A stretch of 63,299 nucleotides of DNA, the filler included, from Reticulomyxa filosa (lineage: Eukaryota > Protista > Foraminifera): assembly GCA_000512085.1 (NCBI GenBank). It is 21 parts of 21 records of this genome, joined end to end, with 100 filler letters (N's around TTAATTAATTAA, not from the genome) between each part and the next. Parts side by side here need not be neighbours in the genome. Positions count along the whole stretch, not along the records: positions 36,712 to 41,764 come from ASPP01019077.1; 20 more parts are not named here. One strand, written 5' to 3'. The notes below the pieces were generated by a model. That model saw nothing but the letters and a program-made list of their open reading frames with translations. It had not been told where the DNA came from and made no database searches. Position numbers and translations under genes: made by a program. Shown in pieces: positions 36,712 to 41,924 of the stretch. Every line of letters begins with the position of its first letter. Position 1 is the first letter of the stretch.

Positions 36712-37611
36712 GGGGGGAGAGAGGAGAGGAAATACCTAGAAAAGAATTGTGATTAGTCATGTGATAGGAAGGAATATAGAAAACCCAGGAAACGACCATA
36801 AAGATACCAAAAAATCAGTGATGAGACAGAGCCAGTTAAACAAAAACACGTTAAAACTAAGAGCCTGTGCAAAGACCAAAGACTTGGCAGAGACGGAAAT
36901 CATGGACAATAAGATGGACGTCAAAGCAACGTGGTCCAATTTTTGATAATAAACTATCGCTCCGATTTGAATGAGCGTTTGCGGGAATGACTCCACAACC
37001 GCTTCTAATATGAACCCCATATGCTTACGTAATTGAACATGCACCCAGTTTTCAATTGGCGGTTCTATCGCTCCTTTCATATACAAGTATAAATATAAAT
37101 ATAAATTAAATAGAAATATATCAATGAAATATATACATATATACATATATATATACATATATATATACATATATATATATATATGTATAAAGGTTTATGA
37201 TTTTATGTGCATGTATCTGCATATTTTACCTTGTAAACCGTGATCTACGACATCTAATCCCAATGACTTCAACAATTGCGACAACTGATTGTTCGGAATC
37301 GAACACCAATAAATGATAAATGACAACACAGGCGCGAATGGCAACGTGCAAAAAAATACACACAGTTGAAACAAAAATGATCTGTCCCCGCTAAATCGTA
37401 TTGTAAAGGCGAAGCAATAACACAACTGTGCTATCACAATTGTTGTCACCCCGAGCGCAAAAAACTCATACTGCTTTCGCTCGTGGTACCTTTGCATCAT
37501 CCACAAATCGGTACACACATCCGCTATTGACACACAGATTGCGAGACCGTCGTACCAATGAGATAATATAAATTTCAAGCATTGACCATGCTCGTTTACC
37601 AGACGAGGCAT
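36712..37611 (-). CDS. XK-related (XKR scramblase-like) membrane protein, 3' truncated
   Basis: ADVCTDLW in TM1 and EAVVESFPQTLIQ (XK-family ES.PQ motif); (TA)n intron at ~37229-37074. Confidence 0.7.
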
Positions 37612-37968
37612 TTCACTCTTCCAATTGCTGTCTTTGTTTCACCACATCTCTCAAATGATTAAAGATCATTGAGCATTCCCCGCCAAACAAAAAAAAATTA
37701 AAAACACCTTTGCTCTTGTCACAAAATTAAACAATTTTGGAGCTATCCTATTTTTTCTCTTTCGCCACTTTTTGTGTTGTTTTACGTACCTTTTTTCACT
37801 CGCCTTAAATTAACATGTAACGCTGCTAGCATATATACTATATAAGACATCTCCAAGAGAAAAGTAAAAAAAAAAAAAAAACTTGCGCACATTGTGTATC
37901 ATAATGTAAGATTTCTATTAACATAGTATTTGTTGCAACACATAAGAGTGAACCTTAGCTAAAAAGGG

Positions 37969-38629
37969 ATGTCAAAAAAACCAAAAAAGGGTTCAAAAGG
38001 ACAAAAGAAAAAAGAAGCAGAAGAAAAAAGAAGGCAACAAGAGGAACTGTTACGTCTGAAGCAAGAAGAAGAAAGAAAACAACAAGAGGAACTTGAAAGG
38101 CAAAAACGTGAGCAAGAAGAAAGAGAGCGATTGTTGCGAGAACAATTAAAACAAGAGGTGAGACACAGTTTAAACAAATAGGAATAACATTAATAAAGTT
38201 GTTTATATAAAGTAGCGCAAGAACCTGTTTTTTTCCCCCCCCCCCTCCCCTCTCCCCCCTCTTTGCAAACAAATCAATGTAGGAAATATTGCGACTGACA
38301 CAAGAAAAAGAAGAAGATAACACGTGGACCCAATCAAGAGAAGAGGATTTGAAAAGATTAATAGAGGAGGAGGTCAGAACAAACGAATGGAACAAACATT
38401 TGCAATGCAATTCAAAGATTGATATTAAACATGAAAAGGAGTTAAATGACTTCATGAGTATTTGGACAGATAATAAGACCATTATATCCACAGCTCTTAA
38501 AGATTTGATGGGTTACGTATGTATAGATACATTATTTTATTTAATTAATTATAAAAAAAAAAATTTCTTTTAAATAAATGTTTATTTGCAAAATAAAACA
38601 AAACAAAACAAAACAAAACAAAACAAAAC

Positions 38630-38662
<33 letters not shown>

Positions 38663-40794
38663 GATCGAATTGATCCGATAATCGAAGAGTGCGATGAAGG
38701 ACTAGCATTGCTACCAGACATACAAGATATGGAATTGGAGAGTTTATGCAGTGATAACTTGCTCAGAGGACGATATTTTGCTTGTAAGTACGAAGAGATT
38801 TTCGACATAGTATTGACGAAGTTGCATATATTGACAAGTAAGTGTTTGTCCCATGAACACTTCTCTTCGGTCCATCAAAGAAACGAGACAACAGGCATGG
38901 AAGAGTCTTATCAATGCGTTGTCAAGTCCAATGTGTTTTGGTGCTTGTGGTCATCTGCTATGACAAACGTGTTCAAAAATATCAAAATTGAGTTTAACAA
39001 GGCCAGTATTGCTATCGAATTGCCGAAACAAGTGGCAATGAAAGCACAAATGCCATTAAGCTGCCACGTCATTTGCACGTATACATTTCTTTAAAAAATA
39101 AAAAATAATAATAAAAAAAATCCTTTATTAATGTCTATCAAAGATGATGCAAACACTTTTATCCATCTCTTTTGTTTGTTTGTTTTGCTTTTTTGTCTTT
39201 TCTCACATTTTGTTCGTCCTCCTCTTTGATTTCGTAAGTGCACATGATCTGAACATTCATTGCAACAAGGGACAATATGAATGTGCAAGCCCAGTGTTAC
39301 GAATACAATTACTTAAACTGCCATCACCTCCTAGAATGATGAGTACATGGAAAGTTCAAGTCATCACTCCGGATGTTGAAAGTGCTGAGGTGTGGGATTA
39401 TGGCCGAAAGTCTGAAGTCAACGAAAACGCACCCGAAGTTTAAAACATAACAATACTAAAAAAAAAAAAAAAGCCAATTGTTTTTAATGAAAACAAACAT
39501 CATCCCACATATTGACATGGCACTAGTTAGTGAATATCGTTTGGAAAGTCCCTTCCAGAGTGTTTGTTTCAGACAAAGTTGACCTGGGATGGTGGGATCA
39601 TAATACTAAAGAATGGAAAGTACAAGACTTTAAGGACATCAAGTATTATTGATACAATTTTTGAAAATCTATGCAAGATGTTTATTTTCTGCTCATTTTC
39701 AATTCTCAAACTATTTAAGAAAGGGAGCAAAACAAAAACTTTTTGCTTCACAAACTGGCAAGTCCAGGGAATTAAGCCTTTTTAAAAAAGAATCACCAAC
39801 CTTTCAAAGCGTAATTGTATTTGTTTGTCAAAATTATTTACAGATGGAATGAAAAGAGCCGCTCATTAGAATTTGTAACAGCACATTTGGCTCCATTGTG
39901 CATAGTGGCTCCAAGAGGCATGTTTTTTCAGCATAAAAAGTGGAGGCTGCTTCCAATTGAGACTGAGCGTTGTCAGCTGATATTGGAAGAAGAAAAGATT
40001 GAAATTACAATTGAAATTACACGTGATTCGGTGTGCCTAGTAGGCCCAGACATACCACCATTGAAACAATTACTAAAACGATCTATGAAACCTTATCAAC
40101 TGATTCGAGTTATCAAAAAAAAAAGAGTAAATGCTTTGTTGTATTCGTCTCTTATTCTTTTGTATGTTAATTCAACAACGACAGAATCTAAGGGAACATG
40201 GCATAAACATTTGCCCAAACGATGAGGATATTAGAATTTTAGCAATGACAAACAAAAGCAAGGAAATCCAAACTAGAGCGCATAGAGAAATCTCTACGTG
40301 CGCACTCTATCTTTTTTTTTTGTTTCCACACTTTCCAAGCATAATTGTCTTTAAATACTTAACAGAATTGTCTCACATTTTGAGCTTAGTCGCTCGAAAT
40401 GGAATAAAGAGGGAAAAACAAATGAAGTATTTTTTCAGCTACGCAACGTGTTACTGTCTTCTGAGAAAATGGATCCAGTTCCTAATGGAGAACAAAGCTG
40501 GAAATTAGTAATGATTAATGAAGAAAAGTGTATTTTAGTTGACTCTAATGAATCCTGTGACACTTTAAATACTGAAATTTTCAAAGCTGAAGTTAAAAAA
40601 AGCCTAACAAATGTATACTGTAGAAAATATCACAACCAATCAATAAACAAACTCAGCTCTCTCACACAACTCTACGACGATGTCTGTTAGCTCATTGGCT
40701 TAATGATCCCAAAACTGAGTTGAATTCAGCGCCGATTATGTTCCAACACACAATTGAACAGTGCTTGAACTTGTTAAAATTGTTCCATACTTAA
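37969..40794 (+). CDS. CASC1/DNAI7/IC97-like axonemal dynein-associated protein, multi-exon
   Basis: K/E-rich N-terminal coiled coil, WNKHLQC...ELNDFMSIW, CLWS, LLKLPSPP, KKWRLLP and REHGINICP follow the CASC1 family pattern. Confidence 0.75.
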
Positions 40795-41077
40795 AAAGCA
40801 CTAAATTTTTTGAAAAAAGTGTGCCTTCTTCGTCACATTTTGCTTGTCTTGATCATCTATTATATAAATTTTATAAACATTAGTGCCGTTGTACTTTGTC
40901 CAGCGCTTTGGAAAATAAAAACAAAAACTTGAAAAAATTTCAAATCTTTTGGAATGAAAATGGTGTATCTTGAAATTCTCTAATTTTGCCAAACATACGT
41001 TATGCACGTTGACAGAAAAAATATATCAGCAAATATTCAACTTTGTATTGATTTTCCCAAATTTTCGCTGCTTCGTT

Positions 41078-41168
41078 AAAACTCGGTTTCGCCCTTCCGC
41101 TGGGCTCTTCAGTACACTCCAGAAGTGTAGACCGGTTTCGCCCTCCATTGGGCTCATCAGTACTCTCA
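41078..41168 (-). ncRNA. Tandem, interleaved hammerhead ribozymes
   Basis: Minus strand: CUGAUGA-GCCC(AAUGGA)GGGC-GAAA-CCGGUC^-UACACU(UCUGG)AGUGUA-CUGAAGA-GCCC(AGCGGAA)GGGC-GAAA-CCGAGUU. Cores at 41160-41154 and 41112-41106; GUC cleavage site between 41130 and 41129. Confidence 0.9.
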
Positions 41169-41580
41169 GGACGGATGGAAAAGGGGATTAGCCTACATCA
41201 TCCTCTTGGGTAACCACTGTAGTAATTCCCAGCCATCCCCCAGTCTGCACCGGTGGTGCTATAGGGTTCGGTGGTTAACTGGGAAAGTCCGGTAACTTGT
41301 CTGCGCAAGGGCCGACCTCTCCTAGAGGCCGTCTGCATGCGGAGCAGAGGTTACGTCGACTACAGGGCTCCCAAGCCCCCATAGAGATGTCGTACCATGA
41401 GGGTCCCCGGCAGAGTAAAGGGTGGGGCTGCTCTATGAGCGCCAACGTCCTTCCCTCCCAGGACTTCCGCAGCCAGTCCTATCTATCCAGTAGTTAGGAC
41501 AGAAGGCCTATCGGCTCCCCTTCTTTCGCCGGTCCGGCTGCAGGCAGCGGGCATCTCCCTAAGAAAGAGCAGACCAGTCA
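41080..41580 (-). mobile_element. Non-autonomous, GC-rich, structured hammerhead-bearing insertion (retrozyme or Penelope pLTR-like)
   Basis: About 57-62% GC in two lines counted, against AT-rich flanks; many hairpins; ribozymes at one end; removing it rejoins a reading frame. Confidence 0.7.
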
Positions 41581-41924
41581 GTTTGCTTTTAACAAACTTC
41601 TTGCAAGGGATCAATGGCCTTGTCCTTGTCCATGACAGCGCTCAAACTGTCAGCCACTTTGTTGAAGCCTTGCTTCACTCCATTCCAGGCTGTTTCTACG
41701 GTGGCTCCGATCATTACGTACAATTTGTTTTCAACGCTGTAAGCCATCTTCGATTTCACTGAATNNNNNNNNNNNNNNNNNNNNNNNNNNNNNNNNNNNN
41801 NNNNNNNNTTAATTAATTAANNNNNNNNNNNNNNNNNNNNNNNNNNNNNNNNNNNNNNNNNNNNTTTTTTTTTTTTTTAAAAAATGTTATTATGACAACG
41901 TCAATATCCAAACAAACAAACAAA

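Follow-up and report, generated by a model that had tools for sequence, protein, structure and literature searches.

A candidate hammerhead-delimited RNA element of the retrozyme type in the genome of the foraminifer Reticulomyxa filosa

The locus described here belongs to a window of 63,299 nucleotides, the whole stretch of Reticulomyxa filosa DNA that was analysed, where it occupies a piece of 5,053 nt (positions 36712-41764, from ASPP01019077.1). This piece consists of AT-rich eukaryotic DNA with short introns, and the features that surround the segment of interest are the following:

36757-37611, minus strand: XK-related-like gene, a weak match to Pfam PF09815 in two exon-like ORFs (E = 8e-6 and 1e-3)
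37969 to ~40690, plus strand: CASC1/DNAI7-like gene, recognised through Pfam
40800-41080, no strand assigned: AT-rich flank (29% GC) that separates the element from the 3′ end of the CASC1-like gene, without PX-family homology
41574-41764, minus strand: PX-domain-family gene fragment, homologue of R. filosa RFI_01644, which reaches the end of the piece

XK-related proteins are mainly known from animals, and an exact-protein lookup with the XK-related exon ORF found it not on record. Word-indexed homologue searches with the CASC1-like exon and with a 52-aa ORF returned nothing, probably as a result of their length window. Simple repeats occur in non-coding parts (37128-37190, 38236-38262 and 38590-38650), among them a (TA/TATACA)n repeat that gives spurious, sub-threshold miRNA matches in Rfam, together with a C-rich tract and an (AAAAC)n repeat inside introns of the CASC1-like gene.

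Between the AT-rich flank and the gene fragment there is a block of ~490 bp (41081-41573) with 57.6% GC, against 28.8% on its left (40800-41080) and 45% on its right (41574-41764), while the surrounding DNA is AT-rich and the jump from 29% to 58% GC falls at 41080. The original prediction of a sharp GC-rich island with no convincing ORF is thus borne out, since none of the stop-free frames of the block has a Pfam match. A tRNA scan of the block detected no tRNA, Rfam reported no family in it other than the hammerhead, BLAST against plasmids, phages and E. coli gave no match, and a likeness between ADRPSVL and ADRFPPL within it was without tblastn support. All the helices that had been listed for the block exist in the sequence and appear in its minimum free energy (MFE) fold. 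Compared with shuffled sequences, the linear minus strand folds modestly better than chance (z = -2.45), the plus strand fails to do so (z = -1.7), and a 442-nt unit of the minus strand folded as a circle reaches -176.8 kcal/mol (z = -2.46), with 65% of its bases paired. Only the outer limit of the block, formerly drawn at 41580, had to be moved: its 5′ boundary on the minus strand lies at 41573/41574, where the host homology ends.

On its minus strand, the block contains two complete hammerhead cores at a distance of 48 nt, so that the tandem hammerheads proposed earlier are recovered both by Rfam and by a pattern search (CUGANGA-GCCC-loop-GGGC-GAAAC, 2 matches against 0 expected); in the Rfam search the ribozymes were restricted to one polarity. 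The invariant core (C3 U4 G5 A6 N7 G8 A9...G12 A13 A14) is present in both motifs, along with G10.1-C11.1, A15.1-U16.1 and H17, and the core sequences read CUGAUGA...GAAA and CUGAAGA...GAAA, with predicted GUC^ sites at 41572 and 41130. Core A is predicted to cut after C41572 and core B after C41130. Read 5′ to 3′ on the minus strand, the gene fragment extends to G41574 and is followed by U-C, cleavage site 0, a 442-nt unit (41571-41130), cleavage site A, a 49-nt mini-hammerhead B (41129-41081) and the AT-rich flank:

41573-41579, minus strand: helix III 16.x strand GACUGGU, which pairs with ACCGGUC (41130-41136)
41571-41572, minus strand: cleavage site 0, GUC^U, predicted to be cut between C41572 and U41571
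41130-41571, minus strand: non-coding unit of 442 nt with 57.9% GC, bounded by cleavage sites 0 and A
41130-41167, minus strand: hammerhead A, with 2.x strand GAGAGUA, CUGAUGA, and helix II GCCC/GGGC closed by loop AAUGGA
41136-41160, minus strand: core A, with a palindromic mini helix III, ACCGGU
41129-41130, minus strand: cleavage site A, GUC^U, predicted to be cut between C41130 and U41129 (MFE fold and Rfam alignment)
41081-41129, minus strand: mini-unit B, 49 nt, with helix I hairpin UACACUU-CUG-GAGUGUA followed by CUGAAGA
41087-41112, minus strand: core B, with hairpin UACACUU-CUG-GAGUGUA upstream and GGUC before the hairpin

Mini-unit B goes on with a helix II of GCCC/GGGC and loop AGCGGAA, then GAAA and CCGAGU, the 3′ strand of helix III, and together with 41130-41137 it makes up a complete type-III hammerhead motif. 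The type-III model RF00008 aligns end to end with 41081-41137, scoring 34.0 bits (E = 2.1e-6 in a 77-nt search), which is below its gathering score of 48.5. For the 65 nt at 41076-41140, the MFE structure corresponds to the three-way hammerhead junction, in which C41130 is left unpaired as position 17. The distal hammerhead had been described as lacking its stem-I partner, a view that has to be abandoned, as the motif is a full type-III one with a predicted cut after 41130. From the same description, which placed the 3′ end of the element at a GUU^ cleavage position, the proximity of this end to a hammerhead site survives, whereas GAGUU here is the 3′ strand of helix III; to serve as a cleavage triplet, the terminal GAGUU would have to be in a head-to-tail or circular molecule.

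Hammerhead A, which shares a direct repeat (D1/D4) with mini-unit B, continues after its 4-bp helix II with GAAA, the palindromic ACCGGU and C17, and matches Rfam HH9 (RF02275) with 22.4 bits (E = 0.04 in a 5-kb search), below the gathering score of 52. When the whole piece was scanned for an H17 flanked by complements of the core A arms, exactly one site in the 5,053 nt qualified with both helices of at least 4 bp, GACUGGUC^UGCUCUU. This is site 0, which lies at the opposite end of the block from the cores and forms 7 contiguous base pairs with core A in each of helices I and III. Among 1000 dinucleotide shuffles of the 5-kb piece, 9 contained a site with both helices of at least 7 bp, and none did among 1000 shuffles at the composition of the element. 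Core A finds its helix-I partner in the 5′-terminal UGCUCUU, and the 397-nt body at 41168-41564 becomes a giant loop 1 of a split hammerhead; a fold of the 531-nt transcript constrained to this hammerhead is 0.1 kcal/mol above the MFE. Helix I also differs between the motifs by compensatory changes (UGCUCUU/GAGAGUA versus UACACUU/GAGUGUA), with U-A versus A-U at 1.4/2.4 and G.U versus A-U at 1.2/2.2. The earlier idea of a ribozyme-set end survives and is extended by a third site at the 5′ boundary (41572) that matches core A. Both ends of the block therefore fall within ~2 nt of predicted hammerhead sites.

Helix III of site 0 deserves caution. Homology to the host gene stops at 41574, 2 nt short of the predicted cut, and 41574-41579, which supply 6 of the 7 helix-III partners, align with the host gene. 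As these partners are gene-derived, this helix may be partly fortuitous or result from microhomology: GG could be junction microhomology to the ...CCGGUC of the element, and we estimate a probability of ~0.02 for the other four pairs to occur by chance.

The gene that borders the block at this end is itself incomplete. The last 190 bp of the piece (41574-41764) encode 57 residues that correspond to internal regions of proteins of 500-750 aa, several of them with a PX domain; phmmer against representatives gave 5 hits, and the family carries PF00787. Identity to RFI_01644, the closest relative that has a name, is 78.6% at the amino acid level (tblastn, E = 6e-25, with a second HSP in another frame) and 86.6% at the nucleotide level to the R. 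filosa contig ASPP01001609.1 (blastn). Relative to this paralogue, a net deficit of 26 nt between CCCTTG repeats shifts the frame and leads to a premature TAA at 41589-41591, and the homology goes on in the shifted frame (LIPCKKFVKSKLTG versus LTPCKEFVESKLSG) until it ends at G41574. An intron of the paralogue ends 11 nt past the end of the piece, and no match to the remaining ~380 codons of the PX-family gene was found in 40700-41080.

It had been argued that deletion of the block restores an ORF (KKFVKSK). This argument fails because nothing downstream of the block continues the gene; moreover, its frame differs from that of the upstream 52-codon ORF, and the gene fragment shows a frameshift when aligned with its R. 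filosa paralogue. The join KKFVKSK-LNEAAKIW... was rejected on the frame and homology evidence, and so was an in-frame join deleting 41082-41586, whose only resemblance, to one homologue, has E = 21. As the two flanking sequences do not adjoin each other in the paralogue, the locus does not represent a plain insertion into an intact gene. What is left of the gene may be an older pseudogene cut at the event, a chimera created by template switching, or else one side of an assembly join. As previously stated, no target-site duplication is found at the block ends, and there is no poly(A) at the block junctions. If 41072-41081 and 41587-41596 were joined, they would form a perfect 14-bp palindrome, GTTAAAA|TTTTAAC; we considered it as a possible target or terminal inverted repeat and regard it as unexplained or coincidental, its left half being gene-derived (GTTGAAA in the paralogue).

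These flanks raise the question of whether the locus could be an assembly artefact, with two loci joined across a collapsed repeat, or host DNA joined to foreign DNA, in which case the flanks would never have been neighbours. The assembly is indeed fragmented, with contigs of ~5 kb, the gene fragment ends where the element begins and does not resume, and the piece runs out 190 bp past it. Both flanks are nevertheless R. filosa-like in composition, and the right one is the stretch so similar to an R. filosa gene; ASPP01001609.1 has a composition like that of the piece, with 35% GC overall, 40-46% in coding parts and 24-34% elsewhere; together with the homology of the gene fragment, this makes the host R. 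filosa or a near relative and not an animal. The junctions occupy ribozyme-defined positions, the hammerheads are real whatever the join, and a misjoin mediated by a repeat would imply a multicopy element. We regard an artefact as improbable.

The position of site 0 relative to the gene suggests another scenario, that of a discontinuous hammerhead which, domesticated by the host, would lie in the upstream gene's 3′ UTR and regulate its mRNA by cleaving it. The rodent Clec2 3′ UTR, reportedly described by Martick and co-workers in 2008, is said to hold such a hammerhead, with substrate and enzyme strands hundreds of nt apart. Here the strands are similarly distant and lie past a stop codon, site 0 being in sense orientation 17 nt beyond it, and helix III takes gene-derived bases. 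Unlike in Clec2, the intervening block is GC-rich and foreign-looking and the gene is a pseudogene fragment, a frameshifted and truncated copy that leaves little to regulate, and the paralogue on ASPP01001609.1 is without a hammerhead. All this makes domestication very improbable.

Hammerhead-bearing retroelements with circular RNAs have been described in plants and animals. We lean towards an interpretation of this kind, which we hold as somewhat probable: the segment 41081-41573 (minus strand) of this foraminifer genome would have been copied into DNA from a retrozyme-type RNA element, non-coding and delimited by hammerheads. From the original retrozyme proposal, this keeps the non-coding nature and gains predicted hammerhead cut sites at both ends, and it gives up the cleanly interrupted exon. 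A transcript through the locus would yield a 442-nt RNA with 5′-OH and 2′,3′-cyclic phosphate ends. With the element head to tail or circular, GAGUU^ would be followed by UGCUCUU to create a double hammerhead and a unit of 491 nt, in which the join would provide helix I of core A, and cores A and B would share an extended helix III. For a 109-nt head-to-tail construct, the double hammerhead has a predicted energy of -28.3 versus -34.5 kcal/mol for the MFE structure, that is, 6 kcal/mol above it. The RNA would then be circularised by a host ligase of the RtcB type and copied to DNA by a reverse transcriptase supplied in trans. A ribozyme-processed RNA would leave both DNA junctions ~2 nt from the sites, without poly(A) or target-site duplication. 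The location of both junctions at predicted cut sites is, at the level of the sequence, direct evidence for a ribozyme-processed RNA as the intermediate of transposition. One copy of the element has been seen, the one in the 5,053-nt piece, and 36712-41764 contains no second full unit, only one 442-nt and one 49-nt unit.

The logic of plant and animal retrozymes, a hammerhead-delimited RNA unit that is circularised (PMC7229834, PMC4918200), offers the closest terms of comparison. Metazoan non-LTR retrozymes are tandem units of 150-450 bp with <50% GC and one type-I hammerhead per unit, without LTR, PBS or PPT (PMC7229834). The foraminiferal element resembles them as a non-coding unit of a few hundred nt bounded by hammerhead sites, in its 4-bp helix II, 6-7-bp helix I and minimal palindromic helix III (ACCGGU), in a hammerhead that needs a nearby second copy, in the predicted branched, self-paired RNA, and in the absence of an LTR. 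The palindromic mini helix III is typical of animal type-I hammerheads, which require a partner (PMC4209133). In contrast to the metazoan elements, this one occurs in a rhizarian, has 58% GC (57.9%) and combines a 442-nt with a 49-nt unit, where theirs are equal tandem units. Plant LTR retrozymes (PMC4918200) share with it a type-III hammerhead topology at both ends of the unit and a GC-rich structured RNA; their units, of 600-1000 nt against 442-491 nt here, are released and circularised, and their LTRs with type-III hammerheads come with a PBS, a PPT and a 4-bp target-site duplication. Around the block we found neither LTRs or long direct repeats nor a 4-bp target-site duplication, and, unlike in plants, one of the hammerheads is split across the whole element. 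In the double hammerheads of newt satellite 2 and ASBV (Forster et al. 1988, cited in PMC4209133), two neighbouring motifs rely on a common, extended helix III, as that of each single motif is too short. The two adjacent motifs reported here are alike in this respect, but the partners are unequal (442 nt and 49 nt) and only one of the two domains is complete in this DNA context.

Penelope-like elements also come close. The block could be a 5′-truncated copy, or a solo pseudo-LTR (pLTR), of an autonomous element of this kind, its 5′ end being an ordinary truncation and not a product of ribozyme processing. These elements, which are present in protists, carry hammerheads in pLTRs near their 3′ end, are mostly 5′-truncated and often have unclear target-site duplications (PMC4209133, PMC8557442, PMC11167929), and animal retrozymes appear to be derived from pLTRs (10.64898/2026.07.22.740005). 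With pLTRs and Terminons (PMC4209133, PMC8557442), our element has in common the hammerheads near a retroelement 3′ end, the dimer-dependent design with a palindromic helix III, and a picture in which 5′ truncation is frequent and target-site duplications are unclear. It departs from them in its canonical 4-bp helix II, as compared with 6-8 bp in the min-HHRs, in a 5′ end located at a predicted ribozyme site and in the lack of an RT/EN ORF or pLTR. We found no Penelope RT and GIY-YIG ORF, no corresponding Pfam match and no pLTR or direct pLTR repeat in 36712-41764, a piece that ends 190 bp upstream of the element, this stretch being the host gene fragment. A random truncation predicts neither a 5′ end at a hammerhead site nor a helix I that fits core A, and Penelope-like hammerheads of protists have a long helix III (PMC4209133), against the palindromic ACCGGU seen here. 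A Penelope-like origin seems to us rather unlikely.

The base composition of the element, 58% GC in a genome of ~35% GC, brings to mind an exogenous source, that is, an integrated cDNA of a viroid-like or satellite circular RNA with hammerheads, captured once from an infectious agent, a symbiont or prey, and not a resident family. The ribozymes are confined to one polarity, and environmental contigs hold GC-rich, hammerhead-delimited units that are comparable in size (L040, 530 nt, 60% GC). A degenerate hammerhead pattern was used to scan metagenomes, and it returned 120 loci, most of which are hammerheads of bacteria or phages; the body of the element is unlike all of them, with no match even at word size 7. 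Integration would, in any case, still require a reverse transcriptase. We judge a one-off capture of this sort quite unlikely.

Some of these environmental loci are of interest on their own. The contig VFQP010074536.1 (L040:1-1294) holds the tandem unit of 530 nt and 60% GC just mentioned, with hammerhead sites that have the same helix III (GAAACCGGUC^). A copy 93% identical to this unit is found in Ga0209935_1014342 (L030:368-4900), directly upstream of a LINE-type ORF of 1328 aa with APE, RVT_1 and PHD domains, the hammerhead cut site being ~80 nt before the ORF start. APE-type LINEs would be an unusual place for a 5′-terminal hammerhead. Three ORMF... contigs (L043, L024 and L104) consist of tandem repeats of ~90 nt, each a complete small type-III hammerhead with a CCGGUC^ hairpin (CUGAUGAG...GAAACCGG) and an architecture like that of mini-unit B.

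Coming back to the retrozyme-type reading that we favour, a bolder version of it would see in this locus a resident and active retrozyme family of Foraminifera, the first in Rhizaria, with circular RNAs of ~442-491 nt and an unequal double hammerhead in which the 49-nt unit is a helper. We consider this possible but doubtful. Among the papers searched in full text, none links hammerheads or retrozymes to Rhizaria or foraminifera. If true, the strongly foreign base composition would suggest either a recent horizontal arrival or replication at the RNA level, and the contrast between an element of 58% GC and a host of ~35% GC would bear on whether these elements spread horizontally. The unequal pairing of a 442-nt with a 49-nt unit would represent a design for switching self-cleavage on, and a foraminiferal example with an animal-type architecture would widen the known host range of these elements.
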